64,000 bases of DNA from Lepidodermella squamata (Eukaryota > Animalia > Gastrotricha). The DNA is taken from positions 3,100,001-3,164,000 of the forward strand of contig JBLDXI010000007.1 in assembly GCA_047495785.1 (NCBI GenBank), read 5' to 3'. The notes beneath the pieces are model-generated. The model saw nothing but the letters and a program-made list of their open reading frames with translations, had not been told where the DNA came from and did not search any database. Positions within the stretch are counted from its first letter, which is position 1, and each line of letters starts with the position of its first letter. Both the position numbers and the translations under genes were made by a program. Of the stretch, positions 1 through 39,324 are shown one piece after another.

Positions 1-1017
1 ATCAAGTAATTGGATACAGCTGGTAACAAAACAGAAGGGTGGTTGCGGTTGCACTATCAAATGAAGCAGCAAATTTTTTACTGCCCAGTTCAGATCGAGG
101 AAATCTTGGTCAAATAGTTGAAACCCATTCTCAGGTTCAACGGCACAGTATGATAGCATGGCGGAGAACAGGCAAGAGTAAGCCTCTGGAGAATTGATTG
201 CTGCTCGAAAAGCTTCTCCCGATGTCAGCGAAGCAAGAATTTCACAGATTATCAATTCAAACATGTCGAACCCCATTCTGCCACGGAACGTTGTAAGTTT
301 GTCATTCCCGGCGTCGAAAGCGAAGCAAAGTGTTCGAATTTGACTCGGTGTGAGCTTATCAAATGAAGAGGTCACCCATAAATCGTTGAGTTGAGAGTTG
401 GTCAAAGCATCGAACATCTTCAGCGCCTTCTCACGGTAATTTCTATCACCTTTTCTCGGCAACGATAACAAACATTGGCAGAGTTGGTAGGCAAACTCCT
501 CCCAGTCATTTGTTTCAGACAGGGACAATTCTTCAGCAGTAAATGAAAATAGCCTCTCACAACGAACAAAATCTGCAGCTTCCGAGGACGACATGCTATT
601 CGCGTAACGACTTCCGGTGTTAATACTTTCTTCCCAGCGACGCAACACCTCAGAATCTTCGAAGAAAAGTCTTGACATGAAGGTGAAATTGTACATAAGA
701 ACGGAGTCAGACGATTCACAAGCTGCTTCTGCTATTTGCTCGAAGAATTTTTCCGACCAGCCAAACATTGAATCGACGGTTTTCAGGGCCTTCAAAGCGT
801 CTTCGTAGCGTTTTTGCTGCATTAGAGTTTCACCTAGGCGCATCAAGCTCGATATTTTTCGTTGCCTCGCTTTCAGTTCTTCTCGACTGCCAATCGCTCG
901 ACTGCGAATTTCGGTCAAGAATTCTTGAACTGACGATTTAAGGTCGACCAGTTTCTGATGGACAGAAGATCCGCCAGGATGGACATCGGTGCCAAAAACG
1001 GTTTGGAAAACAGACAT
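1..1017 (-). CDS. Array family member (TPR-like + helical repeat protein), 3' end runs off the window
   Basis: Absent from the ORF track (no stop in window). Manual translation from ATG 1017: MSVFQTVFGTDVHPGGSSVHQKL...LGETLMQQKRYEDALKALKTVDSMFGWSE...DWEEF...LTPSQIR...SLTSGEAFR, which carries the family motifs. Confidence 0.85.
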   Translation of the reverse strand, partial: MSVFQTVFGTDVHPGGSSVHQKLVDLKSSVQEFLTEIRSRAIGSREELKARQRKISSLMRLGETLMQQKRYEDALKALKTVDSMFGWSEKFFEQIAEAACESSDSVLMYNFTFMSRLFFEDSEVLRRWEESINTGSRYANSMSSSEAADFVRCERLFSFTAEELSLSETNDWEEFAYQLCQCLLSLPRKGDRNYREKALKMFDALTNSQLNDLWVTSSFDKLTPSQIRTLCFAFDAGNDKLTTFRGRMGFDMFELIICEILASLTSGEAFRAAINSPEAYSCLFSAMLSYCAVEPENGFQLFDQDFLDLNWAVKNLLLHLIVQPQPPFCFVTSCIQLLD

Positions 1018-2114
1018 TTTTAAGGCTTTACGAAGTTTTTATCCTATAGAAATATTATAAATTTGACGTAACAAAGCGTCTCATTGCGAGATAATATTTA
1101 TGCCGGTCAGGATTGGGCACTTCAAAAACTTAATATTCACCCTGGAAATTCTGATTGAAGATTGATTGAAGTTGATGGTTTGAAAATGTTAGAAAAATAG
1201 AGGTTGAGGTCGCCATCTGGCGTCCACGGTGTAACACCTTTTCGTCATTCATGGCCTTCGCTTTTCGAGTAGGATTATCGCAACATGTCGCCTTACTGCG
1301 GCTGTGCTCTTTGGAATAGAGCTATTTTCTTCTCAACCGGCTGATAACAATGGCTGCTTGATTATGATGACTCATTGGCAATCTTGTAATTGATGAAAAT
1401 CAATAAAAAATCATTGCACATTTTAGAAATTATAAAGTATGTTTTATAATGCCTAATGGCTTCATGTGGTGCGGTAATTGGATCAGCCCTCAACCGTCCT
1501 GAACCTGGAACAATCTGAGTCGTCCAAAGAGATAGCTGTAAATTCATCACAGCGCAAAAGTTGCTTGAAAATAATGTAGGAACCCGGGATTAACTAGCTC
1601 AATTATCTGCATGAAACGACCGTCAGTGTTTATTCCTGTAGCCGGAGCATTTCAGGCTTCTTTTCTCACAAGACGCTTCACCAAAACATTTGAAATGACC
1701 TCCATTAGATCGATTCCGGATGACGGTAACTCTACAGAAATGCAACAGAGCAAATAATCATTAAATTCTGGTTAAGAGCTCAATTTCCCGATATAAAAAG
1801 CCGAAACAATATAATACAAATAACAGCCAGTGAGAAATTGTTCAATTAATAAGCAATAGTCACGTGGTTCCACTCATTACGTCTGCCAATCAGCCTCTCT
1901 TTTCAACGCAACATTTATTTGATTTCAACGCCTTTTTGAAAAATAAAAATAAATTTTCATCTCTGACCGATTCTGGACGGTTCAATTTCCAAGGATCAAA
2001 TGTCTGAAGGTTTGGTTTCTACGGTTTCAGCACTATGTTCTTGCTATGTCAGGATACACGAATTTATTGCTTAGAATTTATGCATTGTTTATTCTTAGAT
2101 TTTTCCTTTCAAAA

Positions 2115-4811
2115 ATGTCAATTTTCCAGCTCGTGTTTGGCGAAGGTACCACGCCAAGCTGTTTAAAGGCGCATGAAAAGCTTCTCGAATTGAATCAGGA
2201 CGATCGAGCTGTCAACAATTTTTTGAATAAAATTCGAATTCGAGCGTTCGGCGGTTTCAACGAATTTGAAGATCACGACCGAAAGGTACACAGTTTATTA
2301 CAGCTGAGCACACTTTTAATGCAAGAATATCGATTCAACGACGCTTTCAACGCCCTGATCAAAGTCGACTCGATGTTCGGCTGGTCTGAGCTGTTTTTCA
2401 GGCTCATCGCAAAAGCGGCACTCAAATCAGAAAATCTAACGATTTCCTACACATTTTCCTGGATTCTGAAGTACTTTTTCAACCGTGAATATCCGATGAA
2501 CAGCTGGAACAAATTTAGATCTGCTAGTGACGAATCTTTTACAAACTCGCCTCTGCAATATTTCTCGAACTTCGAGGGTGAAGACTGGGACGAATTTGCT
2601 ACCGAGGCTTTTCTGTCCCTAGCTGAATGTTCTCCTGATTTTTCGAACCAGATCTTTGCCGCCATTCAAAACTCTAAATTGAAAGATTTATTGCTGAATG
2701 TATCGATAGAAAATCTCTCCCCGAGTCTCGCCCGGTGTATTTGCTTACTCCTATCGATAAAATGCGGCGGGACATCTATCTTCAACGTAATGCAGGTGAT
2801 TGCCGTTAACATTCTGGTTTCCTTGGCTTCGGATCTTGGCTTTCGATGGGCCGTCAAAAACACCGAGGTGTATTCCATTATTTTCAACTCAATTGCGAAG
2901 TTTTGCAAGCGGGAGAAAGAATTCGATTTGAATGGCTTCAAATTTTACGATATAAATTGGGCGGTGAAAAATTTACTTCTCAATTTAACATCGAATACAT
3001 CGCGATTGAGCTTCTGCGTTCAACTGCTTCAAGAAACAACCGACAAGGTTGGGCAATTACAGGCTGAAACATTGGACTTGATTGCTATTTCTTTGCTAGC
3101 TATTGCGAAATCGAGTGATGGTACGATTCGCCGAAATTTCAGTTCTCTTAGCAAGTGTATTGAAATTCTCTTTTCCAATGAAAATCTTCGATCGGAAATT
3201 GCTCTGAATGGTTCTTTACCTTTGGCTCTTGCGATGTGTTACGACGCGACGAATTTCAAGCTGGTCGAAAAGATTTTCACAAATTTCCTATCTGAACTTG
3301 GCAAAGAAGATCGGTTGATTCTGGCGAATAATAAACTGTTCGCTAATCAATTTTTCAAGGCTATACCGTAACGAGTGGTAACTTTGGACAAAACGTGTTT
3401 TTCGAACATTAAAAATCAGCCTTTGCTTCTAAATTTCTGAAATTTTTACCAAAGGTGGGGACGGTCATTCTTGAATTTACTGCAAATTCCAGAAATTTTG
3501 AGAATTTTACCTGACCTTTGGCTAATTAATAGGTGTTCCGGTAACTTTGGACAATTAGAGGGTAGCTTTGGACACTCATTTGCATATGCAATTTCATTGC
3601 GATTTCATTGTGAATTATCTGTTTTTCATGGTTTTTCATTTTATCTTGGGTCAGATTTCGAAAAAAATTATGAACAGATGGCGCATCATCTGTTTCTCGG
3701 AAGTTCAATAAAATACGTTTCTGCGCAGCAGCATACTTAACCCGTCCAAAAGTGTCCAAAATTACCCCAATTTTCACCCGTTTTTCAGGTGAATGCCCTG
3801 CTAAAACGCGTCGACAGATTCCCATTTTATCTTCGATTATAGGGATAGTATAGATAGGAGAATACTCATGCCAACTTTCATTGAAAACTGATCGATTATT
3901 AGAAAGATAGAAGGGGGGTCCCAAAACGGCACCCAAAGTCTTACTGCTTGTAACGTTTTCTGAAATTCAATTTCAGCTCCAATCGTCTTGATTTTTATTT
4001 CAAACGAAAGCTGAAGAGACGGAGAATTTTAAGCAAAAACCCCCATGATTTGAACGTTCAACCCTGAAAAGCTAAACACCTGCAAAGCCGAAAGTGTCCA
4101 AAGTTACCGTGTCCACAATCACCACACGTTACGGTAGATGCTTTTTATCATAAAGGCGAGCAAGCTGTGTTTCGAGCCCGGCCAGCTCTTCAAATCTCGC
4201 ATCTGCTTCATGCTGATTTGGACAGGGATGAAAATTCGTATTTTTCTAAACTAATCCTCGGCCATTTTCATTTCATCAGATCTCTGTTCGTAAAAACGGC
4301 TTATGGGCCTTGTGTTGGCCTGCTTTATGCCGTACTGCGAAGTGCTAAAACTGAAATGCGTGAAAAATGGCGAAAAATATATCCCGTGAAGATCTTCGCG
4401 AAATTAGCCGTAAAAGCGATGTGTCATATCTTGCAAAAGAAGGATTTTTCTCAATTCATTCTCAACATCTTCAATGGAACTCACGACCTCGGTGTACTCA
4501 ACGAAATCTGCTCAATCGCCCCTGAAGTCGCGGAAAAATTCACGTTGCATCAAATGCTGTCGATGATTCGAGTTTTCGATCAGGATCTTGGAATTTGCCA
4601 CGTCCTGAATGAATTTGAGGAGGATTTTATTCAAGAACGCGATCTGGCTCTTGGCATCTTCTTATCGGCCGTTGCCTCGTTAAATGAACAGGTTAAATTT
4701 GGCTTGGTTCGAAATAGGTCGATTCTTCGAAGCGTGATTACGAAGATGAAAATATCCTTGAGTGAACTTGATGAAAAATCGCGGAACCTAGAGGAATTCA
4801 TTGTCGACTGA
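2115..4811 (+). pseudogene. Array family member disrupted by a MITE (3366-4134); 641 aa when the insertion is removed
   Basis: Starts MSIFQLVFGE at 2115. Removing 3366-4136 (element plus one TA) joins ...FFKAI in frame to DAFYHKGEQAVFRARP... and on to the stop at 4811. Confidence 0.85.
3366..4134. mobile_element. Non-autonomous Tc1/mariner-pogo-type element (MITE) with TA target duplication
   Basis: TA|CCGTAACGAGTGGTAACTTTGGACA ... TGTCCACAATCACCACACGTTACGG|TA. Internal subterminal copies of CTTTGGACA/TGTCCAAA. Confidence 0.9.
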
Positions 4812-5358: not shown

Positions 5359-5413
5359 CATAGAGCTAGTTTTAGGTTTCTAAGTTTTTAAGTTTCTTAA
5401 AACTAGCTCTATG
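5359..5413. mobile_element. 55-bp micro-MITE with 16-bp TIRs and 8-bp TSD (P- or hAT-like)
   Basis: GCTGTGTC|CATAGAGCTAGTTTTA...TAAAACTAGCTCTATG|GCTGTGTC. A second CATAGAGCTAGTT end lies at ~5271. Confidence 0.8.
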
Positions 5414-6974: not shown

Positions 6975-7689
6975 TGCCTTCGTCAGTTGCTTCTATTCTC
7001 AGACCGGACAATTTGTCTAAAATATGCTCGCGAATTGCCCAGTTTCCACGAGACATTTCCTAGCTAGTTGCGAGTGCGTTTTCGTGACTGCTGGCAAGCT
7101 GAAGGAATTCGAATCGCTTGTGCTGCTGCTTTGCAAACTTCTAGACCCTGCTTCGAAATGTCGAGAGTCACATTTTTCACGTGAATTCTTTTCCGGAGGC
7201 GATTCCAAGATTTTGAAAACCGTTGTCAGCTCTACTATCGATTTCAACCTGTCTGCCTCACTGCTTTTGCTGATCTTTCGAATCGCCGATGAGGAAACAA
7301 TGCGAAAATGCATTGAATTGTATGCCAACGAGTTTCCTCGGCTGGTTAACGCTGCCCTTCGGAAGTTTTTCGAAAAGCCTGAGAAATCTGAATCACAACT
7401 TGAGAAGAGATGCCGAGATATCCAGTGTTTGACCCTAGTTTTTAAGCTGGTGACTCTGCACGTTCAAGCAATTCAAATCAATCTAGAAAAGAGAGCTGAT
7501 ATTTTCTCGGCTTATTTTGACGAGCTTCAGCTGTCATTTACGATATTGCTAGTCGCACTTCTGCCGGGCAATGCTGATATCCTTACGACTTTAAAACGGA
7601 ACAAACAGTTTCTCAGAAAAATACTTGGAAATTCTTCGAAATCTCTGAAAGAACTGATTGCTACGCGACCCAACGCTTGTGATCAATAA
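6971..7689 (+). pseudogene. 3' fragment of an array family member, closest to 8154-10169
   Basis: RESHFSR..F..G.S and EKPE..ESQLEK..RDIQCLTL are shared with 8154-10169. Homology begins at ~6971 (SLPSSVASILRPDN vs TLPICIASVLKCDN) at the LINE junction, with an internal deletion/frameshift. Confidence 0.85.
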
Positions 7690-18715: not shown

Positions 18716-20305
18716 ATGTCGAATCTGATTAAAGTTTTGTTTGGAAACGATTGCACACCAGGCTGTCCGGCTATTCAACGAACGTTGTCCAGTCCTGATT
18801 TTAGGAGAAATTTCTCACAATTACGCAAGGACATTTTCGAGCGAGCCTGCGGCGGTTACCACGCTCATCAAGCCTGGATTCATCAAAAAATGTACGACTT
18901 TGATGACGGCGAAAGCTGCTACGAAAAAGGTCGTTATGAAGAGGCTTATGAATATTTCCTGAAATACGTTAACAATCACGGTTGGACTTCGCAAGCTTTC
19001 ATTAGATTGGCTCAATGTGCTCTGGAACTGAAAAAACCTCGAACAGCAGTGGTCTACCTGTGGCTGAATTCGCTCACCTACTCGCATCATCTTGTTGGCG
19101 AATTGATTTTCAAAGCTTACGAAGATCTTGGAATGACTGGGATCAATTACATGAGCGGATATTACGAAGACTTTTCGAAGGTTATTCAAGTTTTCGACAA
19201 AAAGCTACTACCGAAATGCGAGGATCTTCTAGCCGAATTGGAATCTGAAGGCGAAGATGATCTAGCGTTTTTCGCAATGTTGGCTTTCCGTACGAAAGAC
19301 TTGCGATGCCGAATTTCCGACTTAATCACAAAGAAACTCGACGAAAACCGAATCGATGCATCTTCACCATCCAGAATTCGATTAACGACTCTCCTGCTGG
19401 TGTCTCTGGATGAAGAGAAACAGCAATCTATCGAGATGGCTTGGTTCAAGGGTTTGGTAGGAGAATTTTGGAAATTTGCAACCTCGGATGAAGGCTTCAA
19501 ATTGGTTATTCAACTCGACTATGATGTTTTCCCTGTTCTAATCAGGCTGTTACCTCACCTTGATCCAAGTCTCTATAGTGACGGCAATCTTTCTGCGCCC
19601 ATTCGATTTTTATTGCTTCATTTCTTGCCATCGTATTGTGATTCTGAGACGTTGCTTTTGAAAAGCGTTGTCGCCTCGCTTATGATAATTGAGGCTATTT
19701 CTAAAGCTGAATCGTGCAACTTCGGCCAAAATCCTGGCGAAACTCTTGATATGCTTTCGTTCTGTTTGCGTAATATGAATGCTGGAACATTGCTGAATCC
19801 TCTTTTTGACGCGATTTCTCAACTCGCCGTGAAGCCGGAATGCGTTGAGGAGATGAATGACAACTCTACCCTGTTTGTCGTTTTGACTCAATTGATGGAT
19901 TCATGTGAATTTTTCGAGGTTTTAGCCGTAGTGAATAAAATTCTGATACAAGCGAGCTCATACCAGCTCGAAACTTTGATGAATAATCAAGTTTTTGTGA
20001 ATTGTTTCATTAAGATATTTGAGAGATATGTCTCAAAAAAGATGTCACATCTTCAAGCTGAACAACTGTCAAACTTTTTAGCTTTAGCTTTGAAGCCTAG
20101 CAATACGCTGTTTTGTCGGTATTTCTACTCGAATGTTTCCTTCTTAAAAACTGCCTTGTCCAAGTATGAAGACGCGAGTTATACAATTTCGCCTATTTTG
20201 GTACCGATTTTCAAATTCGCCGACGTTGAAAGCCAAAAGAAGCTGTCGAAATGCTTTACAAAAGATGAAGTGGTCAGGATTATGACCAAGTTGGCGCAAT
20301 CGTAA
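18716..20305 (+). CDS. Array family member, C-terminally truncated (529 aa), possibly a pseudogene
   Basis: MSNLIKVLFGND, G..CYEKGRYEEAY, PSRIR and TSDEGFK are present. It stops ~110 aa short of its paralogues; residual C-terminal-like sequence (KVFFASVFLILARE) lies at ~20490-20590. Confidence 0.75.
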   Translation: MSNLIKVLFGNDCTPGCPAIQRTLSSPDFRRNFSQLRKDIFERACGGYHAHQAWIHQKMYDFDDGESCYEKGRYEEAYEYFLKYVNNHGWTSQAFIRLAQCALELKKPRTAVVYLWLNSLTYSHHLVGELIFKAYEDLGMTGINYMSGYYEDFSKVIQVFDKKLLPKCEDLLAELESEGEDDLAFFAMLAFRTKDLRCRISDLITKKLDENRIDASSPSRIRLTTLLLVSLDEEKQQSIEMAWFKGLVGEFWKFATSDEGFKLVIQLDYDVFPVLIRLLPHLDPSLYSDGNLSAPIRFLLLHFLPSYCDSETLLLKSVVASLMIIEAISKAESCNFGQNPGETLDMLSFCLRNMNAGTLLNPLFDAISQLAVKPECVEEMNDNSTLFVVLTQLMDSCEFFEVLAVVNKILIQASSYQLETLMNNQVFVNCFIKIFERYVSKKMSHLQAEQLSNFLALALKPSNTLFCRYFYSNVSFLKTALSKYEDASYTISPILVPIFKFADVESQKKLSKCFTKDEVVRIMTKLAQS

Positions 20306-24283: not shown

Positions 24284-24314
24284 ATCCCATAATAAGGTAA
24301 CGAATGTGCTATTT

Positions 24315-26493: not shown

Positions 26494-27234
26494 TGTTAGC
26501 AATGAAATATTAGTCGCTATCAGAATGATAAATAAATAAATTACTTTTAGTACAAATCTTTTTTTCATCTACATTGATAAGAATTATCGATTGAAATCGT
26601 TATGATTCCATTAACTCAGGAATTTCCGGCTTTTCATCATATTGTTTTGTCAATTATGGTTCTCGTCTCGGTGTACAGGTAAAAGCCAGGACCACTGCGG
26701 GTTGTTAGCGGAATAGTTCCGCGTCCCATAACAACAGGCATGATAAAACTGGACAATTATTCAAGGCTTGTTAGAGCCCATGCTGTGTTAAAAACACCAA
26801 GCAATTGGAGGCTGAGCATGTTCGTAACACTGTCAGCAATGGATGGGTGGGAACCGGTTTGGGACAAGTCTAAATGATCCATAGCTATGAGGGCACCGAC
26901 AATCAGTCCGGATCACCGGGCTCAGCCGTGGATTAAGATTCAATCAGCGTTGACAGGATTTTCCATGGATTGTAAGCTTTGAAAAGTCCTGCACAAAACT
27001 AAGAAAACTTCAAATATTCTGTTTTTCTTATTTGTCTGTTATTTGTCTCAAAGGCTTAGTGGCAAATTCCAAATTGTTTGTCATATCAACATTAAAAAAG
27101 CTAAAACAAAAAATACCAAACAGCCAAAGTATTTTATTAATAGAAATAATAGGTAGCAAAGATCAAACACAAAACTTGTTCAAATACTGGAAAGATCATC
27201 CCTTTTGCTGCCAAAAACCCTCATGCATCGAACT

Positions 27235-29190
27235 TCATTGAATTAGAACAGATCGCATTCTCGAGATTATTTCGCTCAACAATTTCCTATCACGCCGCAA
27301 ACATTTCGCAAGGCCATGATTTTTTGAAACAAGTGTAGCAATCAATCGGCCAAACATGAGCTCTCTGCGCACGTAGCAATCGAATCTTTCAGACGATCGA
27401 TTGTTATTTTTGTGATTTCTCGCCAAAGCTCGGTTCAAGGTCTTAAATTCAAGAGAATTAAATCGATTCGAAATTTCTGGAACAATCCTGATTATTTCGA
27501 TTAGAACAGCTAGATCTACAATGTCCCGAGTCCATGACGTCACCACATCTCCAGGCGGTCGATTCACCTGGCGAAGCAAATTGCCAAGAGCCGAGTCGAA
27601 AAACTGTTCAAAAACTTCAATGCCGAAATCTCGGGCCGATTCAGTGGTAAAATTTCGCAAAAATACGAGAATAAACCACGAATTGTTAGCCGTTCTAAGG
27701 TTTATTGTCGTCAAATTAATGAACAACGAATTATCAGCGCTGTAGAAATATCGATAGAACACCGAATCTCGCCCTCCTTCTCGCAAAAACAAGCTAAAAA
27801 TCGGAACGAGAATCAATAAACCATTCGCCACGTAAACCATACTTAATTTCTTCAAGAATATTTTAGCGAAAATCGCACTGTTGACCAGAGAATGCAACGC
27901 ATCCCGAGTAAGCTTGGAGGTGATGAATTTGTAAAACTTTAAAATTATCAAGGATTCGTCCTCCAAGCGCCGAACTTTCGCCAAAACAATAGGTAGCGTG
28001 ACACTTTTCACAAAAATGTCCCCAATTTCCGATTTCAAACACATAAAGTAAACGGCTTCCAGAAATCGTTTGCCTTGTTCTTGGAACTTCAATGTAAGAA
28101 ACAGAAGAGCTAAACTGAGCAAATCAACAGTCTCGTCAGAATTGTGTTGTAACGGAAGCGGCTTATCCGCGGCTACAACCATCAGCACTATCATTGATTC
28201 GAATTTTTCTGAAAGCTGCGTCAAAATTAGGCCGGATGAAAATAACGATCGAACAATCACTCGAGCTAAGAGCGAAAAATTAATAAAATCCACCATAACG
28301 AGTTCAAATCGCAGCTCAAAAATGCTGAGAAAAATCGACGAAATTGCCTCGTGATTAACCAGAGAAATTCGAAATCCGTCATCACTTGTTAGAGATTCGA
28401 GCAATTTACGGATCATTGACTTGAACCAATCCAGCGCAAAGGCGACACAACGTAGCTTGCCAATCGAACAAGTGATGAATAAACAGATTACAAGTCGAAT
28501 TTGGCTTGGTTTAATCGTTTCAATCGAAATATTGTCAGCGAAATCTCGAAAATGGCTATTCGAGCCCAGGGCATCAAGAGTGATTTTCGCACCAGTTATT
28601 GCTTCGGATCCTATCTTCGACTGGCAGGCAAGTAGAGCGACTGACGCTAGATACGTCAAATTGTCCCAATTTTGATTGTCCCATTTCGAAATTCGATCAG
28701 CTTGAAGTTTAAAATCGATAGTTTTCGCGTCGACGTGAGCCATTGAGCAATTGTCAACATTCATTTTCCGAAACTCTTCACGAACTTCGTCCATCAAAGG
28801 ATTTCGGGACGGAAGGTTGTAAACAAAGTTCAACGTCCAACATATAACCATTGCGGTTGAACATCGACCAGATCTCAGGGCGGAAACCGCAAATCTTAGA
28901 AGAAATCCTTCCGACCATGCGAATAAATCGTCAGCTGTTGAAAATGCTTTGAAGGCTTCTTCGTACCGGTAATGGTTCTTTACCATCAATTGGTCTCCGA
29001 TTCGGTTAAGTTGTAAGATTTGCTGCTGCCGTTGTTCAGCGTCGATTTCGCTCATCAAATTCGCTCGAATGCAGATTTTTTCGATGAAATCATCGATATC
29101 TTCGTGGCTTTTCAAATTAAGCAATGTTTCATGCACTTGCGGGGAATTCGGCAAGGCATTTTCGCCGAATATCAGTTGGAAAACCCTCAT
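27235..29190 (-). CDS. Array family member, 651 aa
   Basis: Close paralogue of 20827-22770 (RANLMSEIDA, WDNLTY, RPPGDVVTSWTRDI). Confidence 0.9.
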   Translation of the reverse strand: MRVFQLIFGENALPNSPQVHETLLNLKSHEDIDDFIEKICIRANLMSEIDAEQRQQQILQLNRIGDQLMVKNHYRYEEAFKAFSTADDLFAWSEGFLLRFAVSALRSGRCSTAMVICWTLNFVYNLPSRNPLMDEVREEFRKMNVDNCSMAHVDAKTIDFKLQADRISKWDNQNWDNLTYLASVALLACQSKIGSEAITGAKITLDALGSNSHFRDFADNISIETIKPSQIRLVICLFITCSIGKLRCVAFALDWFKSMIRKLLESLTSDDGFRISLVNHEAISSIFLSIFELRFELVMVDFINFSLLARVIVRSLFSSGLILTQLSEKFESMIVLMVVAADKPLPLQHNSDETVDLLSLALLFLTLKFQEQGKRFLEAVYFMCLKSEIGDIFVKSVTLPIVLAKVRRLEDESLIILKFYKFITSKLTRDALHSLVNSAIFAKIFLKKLSMVYVANGLLILVPIFSLFLREGGRDSVFYRYFYSADNSLFINLTTINLRTANNSWFILVFLRNFTTESARDFGIEVFEQFFDSALGNLLRQVNRPPGDVVTSWTRDIVDLAVLIEIIRIVPEISNRFNSLEFKTLNRALARNHKNNNRSSERFDCYVRRELMFGRLIATLVSKNHGLAKCLRRDRKLLSEIISRMRSVLIQ

Positions 29191-30148
29191 TATATTCAAA
29201 ACAACCTAAACATGCTACAAAAATTAGCCTTAAAAATAAAAAATATTTTACTAAATTTTATATAACGCAAAATTTCGGGAAAACATAAATCCTGAAAATT
29301 GGGCAATTGCTGCTCAGTCTTGATCGCCATCAAATAAATGAAACCATAGTGAAAAAGAGGTTTTGTATCGTAACAACGGTTGGGTTGCCCACCTCAAATG
29401 GTATACCACGTGAAAGGGCAGCTCGCGTTCTATACGCATGCAAAATTTGGTAAAAAACGGAGATATCAGTTTTGAAAAATTCAACTTTGAATAATAATGA
29501 AGATTCTGAAATTTTAGCTTGAGTGCTTATTTGATTGGTCATTTTTTTCTCTATATGCCATCAATCAATAAATTTTTCCATGAAATATTGTTCAGAGTTG
29601 ATTATATTCATGGCCATATTTTTTGTCCCAGGCCCTTACTTCTTCCCTAGGGAGAGGTTCTACTTGTTACAACTATGTGTAACCAATGAAGCTTCTTATT
29701 AGAGAATCTCAAAAATCAACAGTCGGCAAAATTTGAAAAATTATAGCTGCCTAGAAGAAAAAGGTCTCGGCAGTACATATTGGGCTTTCAAGAAAACACG
29801 TGGCTTCGTACACAAATTCATTCGTTTTCATTCATTCGGATTATAATTAATTTTCTATCAAGACATGAAAGGATACCTGGGTTACAGATTTTTTTGCGAT
29901 TTCCGGACTTTTCGGATTTGAAATATGAGTCCTTTTTATAGCATTACCAAATTTTGGAATTCTCTAGCGGCGTGAAATAAATTCTCGGGAATTTCTTGCG
30001 CGTCAAAATTTCAGGACATATTTCGCAAAATGCTAATTTGATTCTGCTAAAGATATTCTGACTTGAAATGACGCATTCCATTCACTATCTAAGTAAACAT
30101 TTTATTAAAAATGACATTCATAGTATTCCCTGTCTCAATCGGCTGACT

Positions 30149-32089
30149 TCAAAACAGAACAGATCGCATTCTCGAGGTTATTTCACTCAACAATTTCCTA
30201 TCACAGCGTAAATTGTTCGCAAAATTATCATTTTTCGAAACAACTGAAGCAATAAATTTCCCGAGAATAAGTTCCCGTTTCACGTAAATCTCAGCAACGT
30301 CAGAAGATCGCGTTTTTCTAACATTTTTCGACAACGCCCGATTCAAGTCGATTAATCGGTTGATACTGTACCTGTTCGAAATATATGGAAATAGCTCCAT
30401 AATTTCGATAAGAACGGCCAAATCCAGAATATCCCGTGTCCATGCCGCAATCACATCTCCAGGCGGCCGTTTGGCCTGCCGAATCAAACTCTCAGAAGCA
30501 AAGCCGAAAATCGCCGAAAAAACGCCAAGGCTAAAGCGTTCAACCAATTTAGTCATGAAATCGACATCGGAATTCCGTAAAATCACGAGGTAGAGCAAAT
30601 AATATTTATCGTAATCTGAATATTTGCAGGACATCATATTGCCCAAAATCGACGATTTCTCGCTGCTGATGTAGAAACAGTGGTAAAATACCGAATTTCG
30701 CCCGCCTTCTCGCAAAAACCAATGCAGAATTGGTAGAAAATGCCCAGCATTGCTAACTTGAAGAATGGCCGTCAAATTCCTCAAAAAAATCGTCGTAAAA
30801 CGCGAATAATTGACTAAACGTCCCAGCTGATCTCGGGACATTTCACGAGTGAAAAAACCGAAAATTTTCGAAATTTCGTCGTGGCCCGAGTTGAGAAATT
30901 CTGCCAGAACGCACGGCAGAGTGATGTTTTTCGAAAAAATTCCAGAAAGTTTCGAACTTGAAAGAAACTGGATTGCATTCAGAAATTTTGCGCCTCGCTC
31001 GGGAAATTTTCGCAAAAGCATCACAAGTCCGAAGCTTAGAAAATCAACGTCTTCGGGCGAGTTTTCTGGCTTCAAATTCGCGGCTAAGTTCAGCCAGACC
31101 ATCATAGATTCGAATTCCTTCAATGTCTTCTTCAAAATTAAGCCGGATGAGCATAGCGATCGAACAGTGATCCGAGTTAAATCCGTAAAATTGAACAAAT
31201 CAATCTCGAATAATTTCTCCCGAAGTTCGAAAATGCTTGGGAAAATCGAAGAAATCGCCTCGTGGTTGATAATAGAAATTCGAAATCCGCCATCACTCGC
31301 CAGAGATTCCAGCAATTTCCTAATCATCGATTTGAACCAATCGAATTCGAAAGCTACGCAATGCAACTTTCCGCCCGAACACGCCACGAATAAATTGATC
31401 AGAAATCGAATTTGGCCTGGTTCTAGAGTTTCGATCGAGATTTTAGCCGCGAATTCTCGCAAGTGGCTATTTGAGCCAAGGGCATTGAAAGTCAATCTGA
31501 TAGGATTTCTCGCCTGGGATCCTTTCTCGCCTCTGCATGCCATCAAAGATTTCGACATCACATAGGTCAAATTGTCCCAATTGCGATTGTCCCATTTCGA
31601 AATTCGATCAGCTTGCAATTCGAAATCGATATTCCTCACGTCGATAAAATCCATCGAATCAGTGTCGATCTTCGCCTCCGAAAATTTCCATTGAGCCACG
31701 TCCAATAACGGATTTTTAGGTGGAAAGTTGTAAACATAGGTGAGGGTCCAGCTCACAACCATTGCGGTTGAAAATCGGCCCGATTTAACAGCTGAATACC
31801 CGAATTTATGGAGAAATTGCTCCGACCAGGCGAATAAATCGTCCGCTTTTGAATAGGCCTTGAAGGCCTCTTCGAAACGTTTCTGAGTCGTCAATGTGTC
31901 CCCGAGGTAGATCAGTTGCGAGATTTGTTTTCCAGCGTCATTTTTATCATGATTTTCACAGGCTCGAAGTCGAATTGTTTGAATAAAATCATTGACTTCG
32001 ACCGCAGTTTTCAAGGCCAGCAATTGCTCGTGCACAGCCGATGAGTTGGGCAAAGCATTTTTGCCGAAGACAAGTTCAAAAAGTCTCAT
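30149..32089 (-). CDS. Array family member, 646 aa
   Basis: Same subfamily (ADDLFAWSE, WDNLTY, RPPGDVIAAWTRDILDLA). Confidence 0.9.
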   Translation of the reverse strand: MRLFELVFGKNALPNSSAVHEQLLALKTAVEVNDFIQTIRLRACENHDKNDAGKQISQLIYLGDTLTTQKRFEEAFKAYSKADDLFAWSEQFLHKFGYSAVKSGRFSTAMVVSWTLTYVYNFPPKNPLLDVAQWKFSEAKIDTDSMDFIDVRNIDFELQADRISKWDNRNWDNLTYVMSKSLMACRGEKGSQARNPIRLTFNALGSNSHLREFAAKISIETLEPGQIRFLINLFVACSGGKLHCVAFEFDWFKSMIRKLLESLASDGGFRISIINHEAISSIFPSIFELREKLFEIDLFNFTDLTRITVRSLCSSGLILKKTLKEFESMMVWLNLAANLKPENSPEDVDFLSFGLVMLLRKFPERGAKFLNAIQFLSSSKLSGIFSKNITLPCVLAEFLNSGHDEISKIFGFFTREMSRDQLGRLVNYSRFTTIFLRNLTAILQVSNAGHFLPILHWFLREGGRNSVFYHCFYISSEKSSILGNMMSCKYSDYDKYYLLYLVILRNSDVDFMTKLVERFSLGVFSAIFGFASESLIRQAKRPPGDVIAAWTRDILDLAVLIEIMELFPYISNRYSINRLIDLNRALSKNVRKTRSSDVAEIYVKRELILGKFIASVVSKNDNFANNLRCDRKLLSEITSRMRSVLF

Positions 32090-32240
32090 CAATGATGTAA
32101 AAGTTGAAAATCTAAATCATTTAACAAAAGCGAGAAGTTATCAGCGGTGTTGGAGCCAAAATGTAGGGTATGATTGGCAAGCGAAGAAAATACACTGAAA
32201 AGGGTTCGAAAACTCTAAAATGAGAAACAAAGTCTCATTT

Positions 32241-32440
32241 CATGGCCAGAAAAATTTTAGAAAAATTCAACAAATTAGGAGAGTATTAATCAAGTAATTT
32301 TATATCAGTTGGCAATGGGATTGAATGTCCCGAGAAGTTTTGTCCAGTCCAGTAAAATACCGGAAATTACCGAACCAGTAACCATCGGGTTTTTCCGGGT
32401 TTTCTTCTGTAAATGTCCCATTTCTTCGATTAAATCGCGG
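32241..32440 (+). repeat. Dispersed repeat, diverged copy of 36788-36958
   Basis: Shared blocks CATGGCCAGAAAA, GTAAAATACCG.AAATTACC, CCATCGGG and TTTCTTCG.TTAAATCGCGG. Confidence 0.7.
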
Positions 32441-33472
32441 TTAAAAGACAGGACTTTTCTCTCGCAGATTCTTCATGTCTAGAGCTACCTTTTGATACTC
32501 GGAGCGATCTTGGATGATTTTTCCTGATTTTCTGGAAATTTCGCAAATCTCAGACAAAGGCGAATTTTAACACTGACAGTGCGCTGGATTATTTTCAACT
32601 ATGCACCATGTGCTTAAGCATTTGGAACATGCAGACACTGGTTCAATTTTGACTGGATTGATAAATCTTCTATTTAACACTAAATCATTTTTTCAAGATT
32701 TGAATAGAGCAGAATTATCTCATTTCGGCCGCTTCCTAAATTCAGCCGCTGCGACCAAACCTGGTTGACAAAGAAGGAAAACCCCGAATTTAGGACGCGA
32801 TACTCTACCTCACTCGCCTGCTGCGAAAAATACAATAAATGAAAAGTTTTGTGCACCGTAATTTTTACTTGGAACCACCAACTAATCTTTCGAAAAAAAC
32901 ATTTTCGATTTTGGCCATTTTAGCCGCGCAATTTAAAAATATCTAGCGACCTAGATAAATAACTTTCAAACTTCTGGAACTCTGATAATTTTTGAAAAAT
33001 GAAAAATTGCTTTTGACATTAGGCCTGGTTAGATTCGAGTCGATTTACGTCTACGATTTTCACCATAAAAAGCTTGGGCTTTCCAGCCTGAACCTGTAAA
33101 CCTAGAAATCTTTCGCCTACTTCCCACCTTTACGCAATCGTAATTATGTTTTCTTCGACAATTCAAAATTCGAAGCCATTTTTTCTAGAAAATTTCATAG
33201 TATCAGTGAAGTAAGGTATTTTACCATTAGTACCAGAGACGATTTTCAATCCGATTATAGCATTCGCCGAGAATTTTCCTGAATCGTATAGTCATTTTAG
33301 TAACATAAAATTGAAAAAACTAGAAGAGAAAAGAACCCATTTTGATTGTTGAAAACGAAATTTTACTCAACAATTCGGAAAACACAGTTTTGAATCACCC
33401 ATACTTATCGAAGTGAAAAAATGAACATCAAGGACTAACAACGCGAAACAAAGAAATTGATAAGGATCTCGT

Positions 33473-35431
33473 TCATTCGAGAATCGGCCCGTCTTTCTTC
33501 TCGCAAATCTGAACAGCAGCTCGAGTTTTCGCGATCATTTCAGCCAACAACTTTTTATCCCGCTTCAACCCGAGTCGAATTTTTGGATTTTGATACGCAA
33601 AAATAGCGACCAAATTGGCGAATGAAAGTTGAACACACGCCGTAAAATCATCCATTTTCTTCGCATGAAATCGCTTGGCAAGAGCTTCAACATGTAAATA
33701 ATTGAATTGAACCAAAATTTCAGGCGAAATCGAACAAATTTCGGTCAACACGAAAAACGACTGAATCGTAGCCGAACTGGGCGAGTCTTGAAATTGCCGA
33801 TCCAACAGAATTTTCGCAATATTCGGAAATAAATTTGCCGAAAACAACTTGCCCCATCGTCGTTTCGTCTCGCTATCAGCCAATTTCAGCAAAATAACCA
33901 GAAAAGGCAGCAAAGAATCAATTTTTGTCACTGAATTTTCGAAAATTATTTTCGCCAGTGAAGAATTGCCACGGGCGAGAAATTGGCGGAAAAAGTAGGA
34001 ATCGAACGGTTTCTTCGCGTTTTTCTCCAGCAAAATAACCAGAAATAATTCGGCCAATTGATTCGAATCTTTCGAACTTTTCGAAGCAATAACAGCCCCG
34101 GTATTTGCCAATAATAATTTGACAAATAACTGATTATTCGCATGTAAATTGCGGCCCTGGCAATGGGTTTCGATGTAAGCCTTCAAAATTTGGCTCAATT
34201 CTTCGAAATTATCCGGTTTGAAGCAATGAACTAAAGCGATTGACAGGGTCAAATCTTTGGCGAGAAAATCGTGAATTTCCGGTATTTTCATCATTTCATT
34301 GATTGAATCGATCAAATATCCCATGGCTTGATTTTCATTCCGAATTTTCAAAATATTAAAAATCAGCGATAAAATCGAAATTAGTTGAGGCAGATTTTTC
34401 CAAGGAATCGGCCAATGCACAACAACTGAATCAGCTTTATAAAGAAACGGCGGGAATAACAGCTTCCATTGGTCAGAAATAACGACCAGCAGCGTGAATC
34501 GAAGCATCCAAGTCAGATCGCAAAAATCATGGTAGTAAATTTCGTCCAAGAAAAACGAATGATAATTCAGGAGTAAATTGATGAAAAGCAGGAAAAACGC
34601 CTCGTTGCATTCAACCGCCCGGCGGAACCCAGTTTCAGTGCCGAATGACCGAATTAATTTGACAAATAAATCATCAAACCATTTTCGACCTTTAACCGAT
34701 AGCTCCAAATGTTCGAAAGACGCGAGGAGAATTGTTAAAAATCGAATTTGACCGGAATCCAATTTTTCGAATGAAATGTTCGATTTCAAAATTTTGAAAT
34801 TCGGATGTAGATCAAGGACGTCGAGTACAAATTGCGTGATTTTCACGCCTTCGGTTTTGTCTTTCGCGTAGAGTAGGACGTGGTTAACCATACTAGCCAA
34901 TTCGTCCCAATTTTCGTTCGCTCGACACGCGTCTTCGAGAATTTGGAAAACGCGCGGAATTTCGCGGTTGTTAACGCTGACCATGCCGCGCAGACCGGGC
35001 GGGTAGAACACGTCGAAGCCGAGTGATTTGAAGCAATCACTTCGAATCTGCGTCATTCGATCGCTCGGCTTCAGCCGGTATCGCATGAATGAAAAAGTCA
35101 TCGCCTGGCGGTATTTTTTCAATGCCATCGCGCTTTCGGCTAATTTGTCGCAAACAGCGGATGAAAAATCGAAATCGTTAGCTGCTTTGAGCAGGGATTC
35201 ATAGGCTTTTGCGTGGTTGCCTTCTTGCATTGACGATTCAGCGACTGCGTGGTAGCTGTTGATTTTACGGCGGCGTTCTTCAGATTTAACAAATCCGCCT
35301 CGCGATCGAATTCGAATGTCTTCGAGAAATCGGGAGATATCGTCCTCGTTCGTTAAAGCGACCAGTTTTTGGTGTAAATGAACTGAACCTGGTTCAGCGT
35401 CGTTTCCGAAAACCAGTTTCACAAAATCCAT
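33473..35431 (-). CDS. Array family member, 652 aa (subfamily with 37405)
   Basis: MDFVKLVFGNDA; NWDELASMVNH; GQIRFLT; KKPFDSYFFRQ. Confidence 0.9.
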   Translation of the reverse strand: MDFVKLVFGNDAEPGSVHLHQKLVALTNEDDISRFLEDIRIRSRGGFVKSEERRRKINSYHAVAESSMQEGNHAKAYESLLKAANDFDFSSAVCDKLAESAMALKKYRQAMTFSFMRYRLKPSDRMTQIRSDCFKSLGFDVFYPPGLRGMVSVNNREIPRVFQILEDACRANENWDELASMVNHVLLYAKDKTEGVKITQFVLDVLDLHPNFKILKSNISFEKLDSGQIRFLTILLASFEHLELSVKGRKWFDDLFVKLIRSFGTETGFRRAVECNEAFFLLFINLLLNYHSFFLDEIYYHDFCDLTWMLRFTLLVVISDQWKLLFPPFLYKADSVVVHWPIPWKNLPQLISILSLIFNILKIRNENQAMGYLIDSINEMMKIPEIHDFLAKDLTLSIALVHCFKPDNFEELSQILKAYIETHCQGRNLHANNQLFVKLLLANTGAVIASKSSKDSNQLAELFLVILLEKNAKKPFDSYFFRQFLARGNSSLAKIIFENSVTKIDSLLPFLVILLKLADSETKRRWGKLFSANLFPNIAKILLDRQFQDSPSSATIQSFFVLTEICSISPEILVQFNYLHVEALAKRFHAKKMDDFTACVQLSFANLVAIFAYQNPKIRLGLKRDKKLLAEMIAKTRAAVQICEKKDGPILE

Positions 35432-35801
35432 TGCTGAATTTAAGTTAAAACGCCTATACAAATGAAAATAATAGCCATTTAAGGATCAGAATAACTATTC
35501 GTAAACCACAGAAACAAATTTCAATCTCATTTTTGAAATAATTTCATTAAATTAAAGTGAGGCCCAATTTATACGGAACTCATCACGAATTTTATTGGAT
35601 TTTGGAGTCTTGTAATTTTTCATAAAATCTTTAAAAATCTTCGAAATTCGAAAAGCCTTGCTGTTAAATATACCCAATCAACTAATTTTATCATAAAATA
35701 AAGGATAAGAAATTTATGACAATTCGCTTGACAAATACAAGAAATGACAAGATTTTTCACGGTTTTATCAATGAATAAATAAAACACAAGCGTAATTCAT
35801 T

Positions 35802-36787: not shown

Positions 36788-36958
36788 ATGGCCAGAAAAT
36801 ATAAAAAATCAAGATAATAGTATTCAAGAATGTCACTTGTCAATAGGATTAAAAAACCGGAGAAATTTGAGCCAATTAGGTAAAATACCGAAAATTACCA
36901 TCGGGGTTTTCCTGGTTTTATACGGAAAATTTTTTCAATTTCTTCGGTTAAATCGCGG
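36788..36958 (+). repeat. Dispersed repeat, copy of 32241-32440
   Basis: Same shared blocks as 32241-32440. Confidence 0.7.
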
Positions 36959-37404
36959 ATGGTATATTCTCTTGGTAGGTTTAATTTAAAAAATTAGTTA
37001 AAATTTCTACAAACATTTGCCCAATTAAAAAATAGTTAACATTTGCTCTTAAAATAGTTGCGCAACTTCTGGGACGCGCTGGTAACATTTTCGAAAAAAG
37101 TCGCCAAGACCAATTATCATGATGAAATTCTCGAGAACAAAAAGAATCCGAAGGCCAACGGATCAAACAGGGCTTGTTTTAGTCTCCGATAAATCCGGTG
37201 AATATTATTCGTATTAAGCTCTAAAAACAAACTAGATTAATTTTCCAAGATTTCATTTAAAATTTATTCTCTCCATCTCTCTCTGCAATAATACGGATAT
37301 ATAATCCGATTAAAAGTTTCACATTATATTATATTTCATATAATTCAGCAGATAATTCGGCAAGATCTTGGAAAATGAGATTCTCAATGAGATTCAATCA
37401 CATA

Positions 37405-39324
37405 TTAGTCCACACAGATTTCTCGACTGTCAAAACTCTCCAGCGACGAGCGCATCCTGTGCAAAATTCTACCCCGAACCTTCCCATTTCGAATCAAATA
37501 ACTTCGAATTCCTGGATTCCGATCGGCAATCAACGCGAGCAGAATTCCGAATCTCAATTCAGCAGCAGCAACAAAATCATTCATTTTTAGTTGATGCAAG
37601 CGGCGAGCAATCGCCTCAACCAAAGTCGAATCGAACAGACTCGAAATTTCGGGTAACATGCAGGAAAACTCGTACAGCACAAGAAAAGATCGAATATAAT
37701 GCTCAGCCTCATCGTCGTCAGCGCCGCCGAAACACCGAAAAAGTCCGTTGATGATACTTTCGACTAAGTCGGAATTTTTAATCAATTTTTTCCAGCGTTT
37801 TTTCGTCTCCGAATTCGCAATTTTCAGCACAACAGCGAGAAGAGACAGTTTCTCGTTAACAAGGCGGGAATCGCTGAATAACTGAGCCAAAATTGTTGAA
37901 TTAGCGAACAGCTGACGAGAAAAAAACGAATCAAACGGCTTTTTGTTGTCATCAACGAGCAGAGATTCGAAAATGTCCGGCAGAATGTCGAGATACAGCG
38001 AAATTTCCGAGCATTTCGATAGAAATAATTTGACGAAAACCTGATTTTTCGCATGATTGATTCGCGTATCAAATCCGATTTTCAAAATATCGTTGAGACA
38101 TTTCAAAGCATTTCTGCCCATCGAATTTTTAACGCAGAATAGCAGTGCGATGGAGAGAGTAACGTCTTGAGCTAAAAATGACCTAATTTCGGACAGCGCG
38201 ACGAGTTTTTTCGTGAAAAACAGCAGATTCGCGACAATCAACTCGTTTTCGCTGCAAATTACTGTCAGAAGAGAAAAAATTGCCATCGATTGGCCGAGTG
38301 CAGCGCCACCAGGTAACGGCTTTTTAATAGTTTCCTCGATTTTACTCAACGCGAAATGCAAAGATTCAGACTGATTTGGGACAATCAATAACAGCAGACA
38401 AAATCGAACAAGCCATGGGAAATCGCTGAGTTGCGACTCAATCATAGAATCAGTCAAAAGTCGAGGGCAATGAGCTGAAATTCCGGCGAAAAGATGGCCA
38501 AAAAATTGCAGATTAGAAAAGGCCTTTCGAAAACCGGCCTCGCCTCCAATCGATATGATCAGAGCCGTTGCGATGTGAGACAGCAATTTATTATTCGACA
38601 CATTTTTGGGGTCAACCGATTCGAATAAAACCGTGAGAAATCGAATTTGGCTCGGCGCCAAGGTGCAGAAATCGATATTCGATTTTAATTTATCGAATTG
38701 AGGATTGCTTTCCAGGGCGCCGAAAACTTGGCCGATGAATGCCGGCCCTTGGTCCGGCGATTTGCCGTACCACAGCGCGTGGTTGACCATTGCCGATAAT
38801 TCGTCCCAATTGTCGCAGGTCCAATTTTGTATAAAATCGAGGCAATTTGAAAAGTCGCTGTATTTCACGCCGAGTTTTCGAGCTTTCGCTTGGTCAATGT
38901 AGTCGAAATTGAGAAGTTTCAACGCCTTGGTTCGAATTTCTACAACGCTGTCGCTTTTTTCTGCGATACAGCATCGCAGATAGGCAAAAGTCAACGCAAT
39001 TCGAGGTTTGGTAACTTTCAGCGCTGTTTTAGCTAGTTTTTCGTAAATTTCAGCCGAAATTTCAAATTTATCAGCGATTTCCAGCAGGTTGTCGAAAGCT
39101 TTTTGGTAGTCTCTGTTTCGCAAAAATGAATCAGCACAGGTTCGATGATGTTCGAGTTCGCCACGATTTTTCTCGAATTTCAAAACGCCTCCCATTGCTC
39201 GTATTCGCATGTCGAAGAAAAATTTCGAAATACTCTCGTCGCTAGTTAGTGAAACGAGACTTTGGTGTAACCTGACAGATGCCATAGGAGCATCGTTGCC
39301 GAAAATAATTTTAACAAGATCCAT
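37405..39324 (-). CDS. Array family member, 639 aa
   Basis: MDLVKIIFGNDA; NWDELSAMVNH; PSQIRFLT; KKPFDSFFSRQ; ELRFG. Confidence 0.9.
   Translation of the reverse strand: MDLVKIIFGNDAPMASVRLHQSLVSLTSDESISKFFFDMRIRAMGGVLKFEKNRGELEHHRTCADSFLRNRDYQKAFDNLLEIADKFEISAEIYEKLAKTALKVTKPRIALTFAYLRCCIAEKSDSVVEIRTKALKLLNFDYIDQAKARKLGVKYSDFSNCLDFIQNWTCDNWDELSAMVNHALWYGKSPDQGPAFIGQVFGALESNPQFDKLKSNIDFCTLAPSQIRFLTVLFESVDPKNVSNNKLLSHIATALIISIGGEAGFRKAFSNLQFFGHLFAGISAHCPRLLTDSMIESQLSDFPWLVRFCLLLLIVPNQSESLHFALSKIEETIKKPLPGGAALGQSMAIFSLLTVICSENELIVANLLFFTKKLVALSEIRSFLAQDVTLSIALLFCVKNSMGRNALKCLNDILKIGFDTRINHAKNQVFVKLFLSKCSEISLYLDILPDIFESLLVDDNKKPFDSFFSRQLFANSTILAQLFSDSRLVNEKLSLLAVVLKIANSETKKRWKKLIKNSDLVESIINGLFRCFGGADDDEAEHYIRSFLVLYEFSCMLPEISSLFDSTLVEAIARRLHQLKMNDFVAAAELRFGILLALIADRNPGIRSYLIRNGKVRGRILHRMRSSLESFDSREICVD

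Follow-up and report, generated by a model that had tools for sequence, protein, structure and literature searches.

Tandem-Arrayed Genes for Predicted TPR and Armadillo-Like Solenoid Proteins, Held under Purifying Selection, in the Gastrotrich Lepidodermella squamata

Introduction

The first 39,324 nt of the window, as the whole analyzed stretch of 64,000 nt of Lepidodermella squamata DNA is called here, carry a row of genes of similar length and strongly divergent sequence. A sequence-only reading described about 12 unrecognized, fast-evolving genes for TPR-like helical solenoids and proposed an arms-race family (pathogen sensors, or toxin-antidote/drive genes) or client-specific chaperones. 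The locus thus raises the question of what these genes are, and whether their divergence is that of a race or of age.

Organization of the Array

When the family profile was compared with the window translated in six frames, 11 loci of a single family were found at 1-39324: seven intact ORFs, one intact copy cut by the window edge, one truncated copy, one copy interrupted by a MITE, and one fragment of the C-terminal part (Table 1). All seven ORFs of 639-671 aa were found exactly where the sequence-only reading had placed them, and the edge, truncated, and MITE-broken copies were each recovered by the family profile. The array as such stands, while the count of about 12 genes with two fragments is reduced to 11 with only one free-standing fragment; what had been counted as another was probably the 3' part of the split copy. 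The intact proteins aligned end to end are 19-29% identical to the first (8154-10169), and identity rises up to 60% within the subfamily of the trio 20827/27235/30149. The whole gene of the edge copy is C7:3099029-3101017, an intact ORF of 658 aa. The copy at 18722-20305 is possibly a pseudogene, or else a short form of the gene.

Each profile match lies in one single open frame, so the coding sequences, including those of the seven intact ORFs, are intronless, and the N-termini are non-hydrophobic (Kyte-Doolittle about 0.3), so a signal peptide is absent. Both properties had been noted in the sequence-only reading. The shared spaced motifs reported there are real in alignments, those common to the family being N-terminal FG...PGS, WDE, PSQIR, GFR, NxxF, and C-terminal RKLL..II.RMR. 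The proteins are predicted to be soluble, with a non-hydrophobic N-terminus and no conserved hydrophobic segment. In k-mer counts of the upstream regions for a common promoter motif, AT-rich words only were obtained. An acceptor-like site closely precedes each ATG and is a candidate point for the addition of a spliced leader.

The true start of the split copy is the Met of MSIFQLVFG. Its two pieces are in the same frame, and no coding sequence has been lost. The terminal inverted repeats of the inserted element start CCGTAACG..., and at least 40 copies with 85-96% identity are present elsewhere in the genome. Taken together with the TA flanks, the repeats and the copies justify the label MITE-broken. 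Pseudogenization, which had been called frequent, is modest and concerns 2-3 of the 11 window loci.

Contigs of sequencing run X1 cover ORF 30179-32048 continuously and not the intergenic flanks; in run X2, the same variants are present and intergenic DNA is covered as well. This contrast fits transcription of ORF 30149-32089, X1 being RNA by guess.

Table 1. Family loci and the inserted element in the window (window positions).
Feature	Position	Strand	Remarks
Edge-cut family copy	1..1038	-	N-terminal 335 profile positions inside window
5' piece of split copy	2115..3368	+	profile 1-447
Non-autonomous element, ~770 bp, Tc1/mariner-style MITE	~3366..4134	.	TA flanks and terminal inverted repeats
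3' piece of split copy	~4136..4808	+	profile 447-657
Free-standing C-terminal fragment	7021..7686	+	profile 432-654
Intact gene, 671 aa	8154..10169	+	ORF; protein used for structure model
Intact gene, 643 aa	16210..18141	-	ORF; long branch on tree
Divergent copy, 529-531 aa, C-terminally truncated	18722..20305	+	profile 2-545; profile match from 18710
Intact gene, 647 aa	20827..22770	-	trio subfamily with 27235 and 30149
Intact gene, 651 aa from conserved Met	27235..29190	-	listed ORF extends to TTG at 29199
Intact gene, 646 aa from conserved Met	30149..32089	-	listed ORF 30149-32092
Intact gene, 652 aa from conserved Met	33473..35431	-	listed ORF 33473-35461
Intact gene, 639 aa	37405..39324	-	ORF

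Family Size and Relatives

Genome-wide, at least 60 family loci were found (the genome searches gave 65 and 63 matches), with proteins of about 650-770 aa. They fall into two clades, A and B. The clades are homologous over the full length (640 columns, hhalign probability 100%, E 1.4e-44), and the split between them is ancient. Physical neighbors are sister genes on the tree, and the family has therefore grown by local tandem duplication.

That the family is unrecognized, as the sequence-only reading held, is borne out by the searches. Ten window, 13 clade B, and four divergent singleton proteins gave only sub-threshold TPR matches in Pfam, and word-index protein searches with one clade A member and one divergent singleton gave no matches. 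A profile search of 1.84e9 representative proteins returned four matches only, the relatives being two environmental sequences, and no long TPR-ARM protein of other animals was among them. One environmental protein (P0001) nests within clade B on the tree. A scan of JGI metagenomes with the pattern M[AS]FELIFG yielded 38 pattern matches and no relatives, and a literature search turned up no description of such a family. The family seems to be confined to the lineage of this animal, with relatives in at least one other organism. The cuticle families of arthropods and nematodes are missing from this genome. The family ranks among the genome's larger ones, yet no name or Pfam model exists for it, and public data contain almost no relatives.

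Protein Architecture

AF2 models, one of them of the protein of 8154-10169, have pLDDT of 87.5 and 88.2 and pTM of 0.85. The modeled fold is a continuous all-helical alpha-solenoid consisting of an N-cap, three TPRs, a helical linker, and about six armadillo-like repeats. A helical solenoid that starts with TPRs and continues as an armadillo-like body, a layout that had been said to recall UNC-45 and TTC12, is supported by the model and by superpositions. Foldseek searches of the PDB gave generic solenoids with TM of at most 0.27; the ESM Atlas shape search gave TM of at most 0.41.

The N-cap has 46 residues with consensus M-x-F-x-L-I-F-G-x4-P-G-S ... D-V-x-K-F ... R-x-R-A-x-G-G. Its identity between the clades is 31%, as against 13-14% in every other region; its dN/dS among close paralogs, 0.18-0.47, is not clearly below that of the rest of the protein. 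None of ten 60-residue N-caps matched a Pfam family, F-box and SOCS box being absent at E up to 10; full-length family proteins had no F-box or SOCS-box match in Pfam either, and the ESM Atlas feature search with the N-cap gave no usable match. Familiar TPR and armadillo-like blocks are here joined to a new, strongly conserved N-terminal cap.

The TPR is a 34-residue helix-turn-helix with small residues at positions 8, 20, and 27, and its copies stack into a right-handed superhelix. Model residues 54-145 superpose on CTPR, CHIP, FKBP38, UNC-45, PP5, and Tah1 with Z of 12-13.3 and rmsd of 1.5-2.8 Å, and the family TPR profile matches consensus TPR proteins with E of 2e-10. Of the signature residues, position 8 is G/A, and position 20 is Ala almost without exception (A76, A111). 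The three N-terminal repeats are genuine TPRs, though all Pfam TPR matches fall below the curated cut-offs and a PDB sequence search with the whole-family profile gave weak TPR matches only. Armadillo proteins consist of tandem three-helix repeats of about 42 residues that form a superhelix with a ligand groove. Model residues 389-670 can be read as six short-medium-long helix triplets, and residues 285-660, compared with beta-catenin/HMP-2, APC-ARM, Wapl, and axonemal ARM proteins, gave alignments of 293-337 residues at Z of 11-12.3, which is under the noise level stated by the tool for helical repeats (about 13). No Arm match was obtained for family members in Pfam.

Selection and Age

The closest paralogs have pairwise dN/dS of 0.27-0.36, and the recent duplicate blocks on contigs C45 and C59 (clade B) have 0.13-0.24 at dS of 0.125. 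Among strains, 26 variants in ORF 30149-32092 give pN/pS of 0.24. No domain and no 30-codon window exceeds 1, pN/pS included, these being crude pairwise counts with which a few positively selected sites are compatible. The genes are intact and held under purifying selection over long and short time scales. The youngest paralogs of the window are at dS of about 0.9, and the paralogs compared range from dS of 0.46 up to saturation, only the C45/C59 blocks being younger. As terminal branches of the tree are also long (median 0.85 changes per site), the strong divergence is a matter of age. The family is old and conserved, not racing, and high divergence in a tandem array here means age rather than an arms race.

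These values go against the fast-evolving arms-race family that had been proposed (dN/dS 0.13-0.36, pN/pS 0.24, no window above 1). Intracellular pathogen sensors or decoys diversifying by positive selection would agree with the at least 60 copies in tandem arrays, some of them broken, with lineage restriction, with dN/dS of about 0.3, which is above that of typical housekeeping genes, and with a neighborhood rich in expanded families (Cys-loop receptors, class C GPCR-like genes, a fibrinogen-domain gene, SOCS-box genes). However, even recent duplicates have low ratios, and within the arrays there are no young paralogs (smallest dS 0.46 besides the C45/C59 blocks). Clade A and B members also have no NTPase family of NLR/STAND type (NACHT, NB-ARC) in Pfam and no TIR, death-fold, or other effector domain. 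An immune or arms-race role is of low probability, and no evidence of a toxin-antidote or drive system was found.

Possible Functions

Somewhat better than even, in our judgment, are the chances that this is a lineage-restricted adaptor or scaffold family, in which the N-cap binds a common partner and the solenoid binds paralog-specific ligands. The logic is drawn solely from how conservation is distributed along the proteins. The invariant N-cap would dock all members to a single partner or machine, and the much more variable TPR groove with the armadillo-like body would provide each paralog with its own ligand, in a way akin to F-box, BTB, or SOCS-box receptor families. Dozens of selected copies point to a network of interactions specific to the lineage, possibly one linked to cullin-type ubiquitin ligases, and the partner of the N-cap, once defined, would give a function for at least 60 genes at once.

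One candidate partner is a subfamily of SOCS-box genes (Elongin BC/cullin adaptors). Such genes alternate with clade A genes at C7:2.87-2.91 and 3.04 Mb and with those of clade B on C45/C59, and some stop about 190 bp short of the start codon of a family gene. The best non-local relatives of the SOCS gene in the clade B array are almost only in the array at C7:2.87-3.07 Mb in which clade A is embedded, so the same SOCS subfamily accompanies both ancient clades. On the other hand, the window contains no SOCS box, nor do the listed parts of the C54 and C21 arrays, and since both families form large tandem arrays, independent co-occurrences are only two or three. That the family is the partner of this one subfamily in a two-part ubiquitin-ligase receptor system, the two duplicating together, is rather improbable. 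Equally doubtful as the immune role is the proposal that the TPR-armadillo proteins and the SOCS subfamily are undescribed two-component ubiquitin-ligase receptors, with docking by the N-cap and specificity by the solenoid, linked before the split of the clades and co-amplified since.

Client-specific co-chaperones of UNC-45/TTC12 type, with the TPR head recruiting Hsp70/Hsp90 by the EEVD tail and the ARM body holding a client, are an unlikely explanation. The module order is that of UNC-45 (TPR, helical center, ARM-like; 6qdk at Z of 12.4-12.5), plant TPR-ARM and UNC-45 clusters are the language-model neighbors (0.86-0.88), and many top TPR matches bind EEVD (CHIP, FKBP38, PP5, Tah1, RPAP3, Sti1). 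The two-carboxylate clamp of HOP TPR1/TPR2A, which we take to be TPR1 Lys5 and Asn9, TPR2 Asn6, and TPR3 Lys2 and Arg6, is nevertheless not kept when the family is aligned with the TPR consensus. In TPR1, position 5 varies, and at position 9, 13 of 17 members have Glu or Asp in place of Asn. In most members, Lys, Arg, or Leu replaces Asn at position 6 of TPR2, and Glu replaces Lys at position 2 of TPR3, the register of TPR3 being uncertain. A canonical Hsp70/Hsp90 co-chaperone role is therefore unlikely, and the proposal of client-specific chaperones is weakened. The TPR region is, moreover, among the least conserved parts, UNC45-central (PF11701) had no match in eight members at E up to 0.1, and at least 60 copies are, to our knowledge, unprecedented for co-chaperones of this class. 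A complex prediction for the N-terminal 170 residues with the tail of the animal's own Hsp90 (ending MEEVD) scored 0.00 and weighs neither way. From the sequence-only interpretation as a whole, the unrecognized TPR-ARM solenoids and their tandem growth remain, the arms race does not, and the co-chaperone has lost ground.

Accessory or trafficking factors for the interleaved, hugely expanded class C GPCR-like and Cys-loop receptors are very unlikely. Between the family genes of the window lie Cys-loop receptor genes (12174-13139, 25348-26568) and GPCR-like genes (13519-15801, 44913-47228). On L031, the only environmental contig with a relative, the family gene has class C GPCR-like genes as its neighbors on either side, and one of these is 43% identical to that of 44913-47228. 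However, no such receptors are present in the other family arrays fetched, and with more than 500 class C GPCR-like candidates in the genome, two per about 230 kb near the family is about the genome average. Transposon or virus cargo, or non-functional ORFs, are hardly credible: MITEs and high-copy repeats do lie between and within the genes, but these are separate small elements, the genes are bracketed by neither a transposase nor terminal repeats, their base composition is like that of the flanks, and purifying selection acts over both time scales.

Comparison with Known Systems

UNC-45/UCS proteins are marked by a UNC45-central domain (PF11701) and, at the C-terminus, by about 400 residues of UCS armadillo domain. 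Like them (4i2z, 6qdk), the proteins described here have a three-TPR head, a helical center, and armadillo-like repeats in one solenoid, and would be cytosolic. The UNC-45 TPRs superpose over 89 residues (Z 12.4, rmsd 2.7 Å), whereas the whole chain of 6qdk superposes poorly (219 residues, rmsd of about 20 Å). UNC-45 has about 900 aa or more as against about 650-770 aa, and the family differs in its unique, conserved 46-residue N-cap, in its number of tandem copies, at least 60 as against one or two, and in the non-conserved EEVD clamp.

TTC12 is similar to the family in size and in its TPR-then-ARM order, and it is likewise cytoplasmic. It is a cytoplasmic dynein-arm assembly factor with TPR plus ARM (PMC8836003). 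Unlike this tandem family, TTC12 is a conserved low-copy ciliary gene, and TTC12-type proteins were not retrieved by the family profile from the 1.84e9 representatives, a sequence relationship being undetected. The plant TPR/ARM_7 proteins (PF26524) are the nearest language-model clusters at 0.88, which is under the lead level of the tool (0.9). They are also TPR plus ARM, but belong to another kingdom, and the family has no ARM_7 match in Pfam.

From F-box and SOCS-box receptors, the family differs in that its N-cap matches no F-box or SOCS-box model, and a tie to ubiquitin ligases is here a proposal. It resembles F-box, BTB, and SOCS-box receptors in joining a small conserved terminal module to variable repeats, in forming large, lineage-specific tandem families, and in the physical mixing with SOCS-box genes in two of its arrays.

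Family loci in the window

The tandem gene family was confirmed as a whole. All seven long ORFs claimed in the sequence-only reading lie precisely where it placed them; they can be aligned end to end and are 19-29% identical to the first sequence. The window is C7:3100001-3164000 of an animal assembly of 121 Mb in 151 contigs. A profile built from 17 full-length members recognized 11 family loci in the six-frame translated window, each match within one open frame. One of two previously claimed fragments was found as a free C-terminal piece, while the second was not found in this search. Proteins start at a conserved Met, and no hydrophobic leader was found at the N-termini of the family. The split gene carries a 770 bp insertion with terminal inverted repeats CCGTAACG... 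and TA flanks, present in at least 40 genomic copies of 85-96% identity. These features bear out the claimed MITE-broken copy and mark the insertion as a young Tc1/mariner-style MITE in a gene otherwise open.

Features in the window and at other contigs (C) of the assembly; plain coordinates refer to the window
Feature	Location	Strand	Remark
Family, edge copy	1-1038		entire gene, extending beyond the window edge, is an intact 658 aa ORF
Family, free C-terminal fragment	7021-7686		profile match
Family, divergent copy	18710-20305		ends at profile position 545
Family, seven intact genes			full-length ORFs, including the trio 20827/27235/30149
Family, split gene			halves match profile 1-447 and 447-657, insertion in between
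Divergent Cys-loop (pentameric ligand-gated channel) gene	12174-13139	+	interleaved with family
Divergent Cys-loop gene	25348-26568	-	interleaved with family
Divergent Cys-loop gene	56877-57932	+	interleaved with family
Class C GPCR-like gene	13519-15801	+	ANF_receptor + 7tm_3, intronless
Class C GPCR-like gene	44913-47228	-	ANF_receptor + 7tm_3, intronless
ORF with fibrinogen C-terminal domain	59329-59949	-	E 4.5e-20
SOCS-box subfamily	C7:2.87-3.07 Mb; C45:881-902 kb; C59:0.7-22 kb		about 220-460 aa, box YPFSLQxLARxAILRxLPxGL, amid both clades
Three divergent singletons, 779-804 aa	C46:1328858-1330498; C2:2221175-2222761; C38:40527-41432		match family over their own length

Extent, clades, and relatives

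The family is far larger than its share in the window. The profile of the window type (clade A) has about 25 matching places on contig C7 at 2.88-3.18 Mb, and by its N-terminal third only it also matches numerous ORFs (700-780 aa) on C45, C59, C54, and C21, designated as clade B. An hhalign comparison shows the two clades to be homologous from end to end (probability 100%, E 1.4e-44, 640 aligned columns), and the profile of clade B itself has 63 matches in the genome. In the maximum-likelihood tree the clades are apart with full support, terminal branches are long (median 0.85 changes per site), and physical neighbours group as sister genes, as is characteristic of tandem duplication. The three dispersed single-copy singletons lack the extreme N-terminal motif (FELIFG start), and neither a Pfam family nor relatives by word search were found for them; they may be its founders.

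Outside this genome, Pfam gave only TPR matches, all under threshold, and a word-index protein search gave no match. When 1.84 billion representatives were searched exhaustively with a profile, four proteins were returned, two of them generic TPR matches and two environmental, P0001 (766 aa, E 4e-18) and P0002 (160 aa). With its best match in this genome P0001 shares only 23-25% identity, and the tree places it inside clade B; the clades therefore split before at least two organisms diverged. No further relatives turned up in a JGI metagenome scan.

Structure and conservation

The AlphaFold2 model computed from the family alignment is all-helical and confident (pLDDT 87.5, pTM 0.85), as is the N-terminal half modelled separately with 30 sequences (pLDDT 88.2). 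Residues 1-46, the N-cap, form three short helices in the model, and residues 54-145 a three-TPR domain that superposes on designed consensus TPRs, CHIP, FKBP38, UNC-45, PP5, Tah1, and others (Z 12.4-13.3, rmsd 1.5-2.8 A); the TPR profile of the family matches consensus TPR proteins with E 2e-10. For residues 285-660, whose helix pattern can be read as six three-helix repeats, structural alignment to beta-catenin/HMP-2, APC-ARM, Wapl, and axonemal armadillo proteins spans about 300 residues (Z 11-12.3). Because these scores are below the tool's stated background for helical repeats, "armadillo-like" describes a fold and not family membership. Nothing specific matched the first 46 residues or the linker 150-285 in structure, feature, and Pfam comparisons. 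The earlier proposal of an unrecognised family with TPR and an armadillo-like solenoid is thus supported by the confident model, the sub-threshold Pfam matches, and the four profile matches.

The N-cap is 31% identical between clades and all other regions 13-14%; within clades it reaches 38-43% versus 17-28% elsewhere. Few parts are less conserved than the TPR region.

Selection and age

Pairwise counting, which can miss a few sites under positive selection, gave Nei-Gojobori dN/dS of 0.27-0.36 among the closest clade A paralogs, at dS from 0.46 up to saturation. For three clade B genes shared by C45 and C59, dN/dS is 0.13-0.24 at a uniform dS of 0.125. In the trio, dN/dS exceeded 1 in no domain and no 30-codon window. 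Between the window and another haplotype or strain, the 26 best-supported differences in ORF 30149-32092 comprise 14 synonymous and 12 non-synonymous changes (pN/pS 0.24). Given these low ratios, the family consists of constrained protein-coding genes, and dissimilarity among paralogs is a matter of age. The fast-evolving, arms-race character and the frequent decay that had been suggested were not borne out.

Segments C45:884-921 kb and C59:3-41 kb have the same gene order, and since dS is uniformly about 0.125 in three gene pairs, they represent either divergent haplotypes or a block duplicated recently.

Expression and transcript starts

Sequencing run X1, called RNA by guess only, covers ORF 30179-32048 continuously and 27235-29199 in parts and leaves intergenic DNA uncovered, whereas run X2, with identical variant letters, covers intergenic DNA as well. 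The comparison is compatible with transcription of family genes, short of proof. Intergenic stretches 29244-29617 and 32049-32600 have X2 depth in thousands and are therefore high-copy repeats. In 23 of 29 family genes (from the window and loci L008-L041), a splice-acceptor-like YYNYAG precedes the ATG by at most 40 nt, compared to 28% of control windows (binomial P ~1e-8), which suggests a 5'-UTR intron or spliced-leader acceptor.

Neighbouring genes

Cys-loop receptor and class C GPCR-like genes lie among the family members in the window. First-look candidate counts genome-wide are 542 (7tm_3) and 1192 (ANF_receptor), which at a genome size of 121 Mb amounts to a very large expansion. Locus L031 (ENA metagenome contig k141_359024, 4949 bp), the sole environmental contig found with a full-length relative, has class C GPCR-like genes on either side of the family gene, one of them 43% identical to window gene 44913-47228. 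Both receptor types were absent from the other family arrays fetched, and because of this and of more than 500 candidate loci genome-wide, the link is given little weight.

Clade A (C7:2.87-2.91 and 3.04 Mb) and clade B (C45/C59) both have SOCS-box genes interspersed among their members, some stopping about 190 bp ahead of the ATG of a family gene; no SOCS box was found within this window. The closest non-local relatives of the SOCS gene from the clade B array are nearly all in the C7:2.87-3.07 Mb array, so one SOCS subfamily accompanies both ancient clades. As independent co-occurrences are few, we treat this association as a hypothesis.

Putative function

Most likely, these are adaptor or scaffold proteins, in which the shared N-cap would be a common docking module and the surfaces specific to each paralog would be individual binding sites. 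For comparison with HOP-type TPR domains, the family was aligned to the TPR consensus (G64 as position 8, A76 as position 20) and inspected at the EEVD carboxylate clamp positions. TPR1 position 5 varies, 13 of 17 members have Glu or Asp at TPR1 position 9, and most have Lys, Arg, or Leu at TPR2 position 6 and Glu at TPR3 position 2. Such acidic groove residues speak against the binding of an acidic tail as in the HOP-type clamp.
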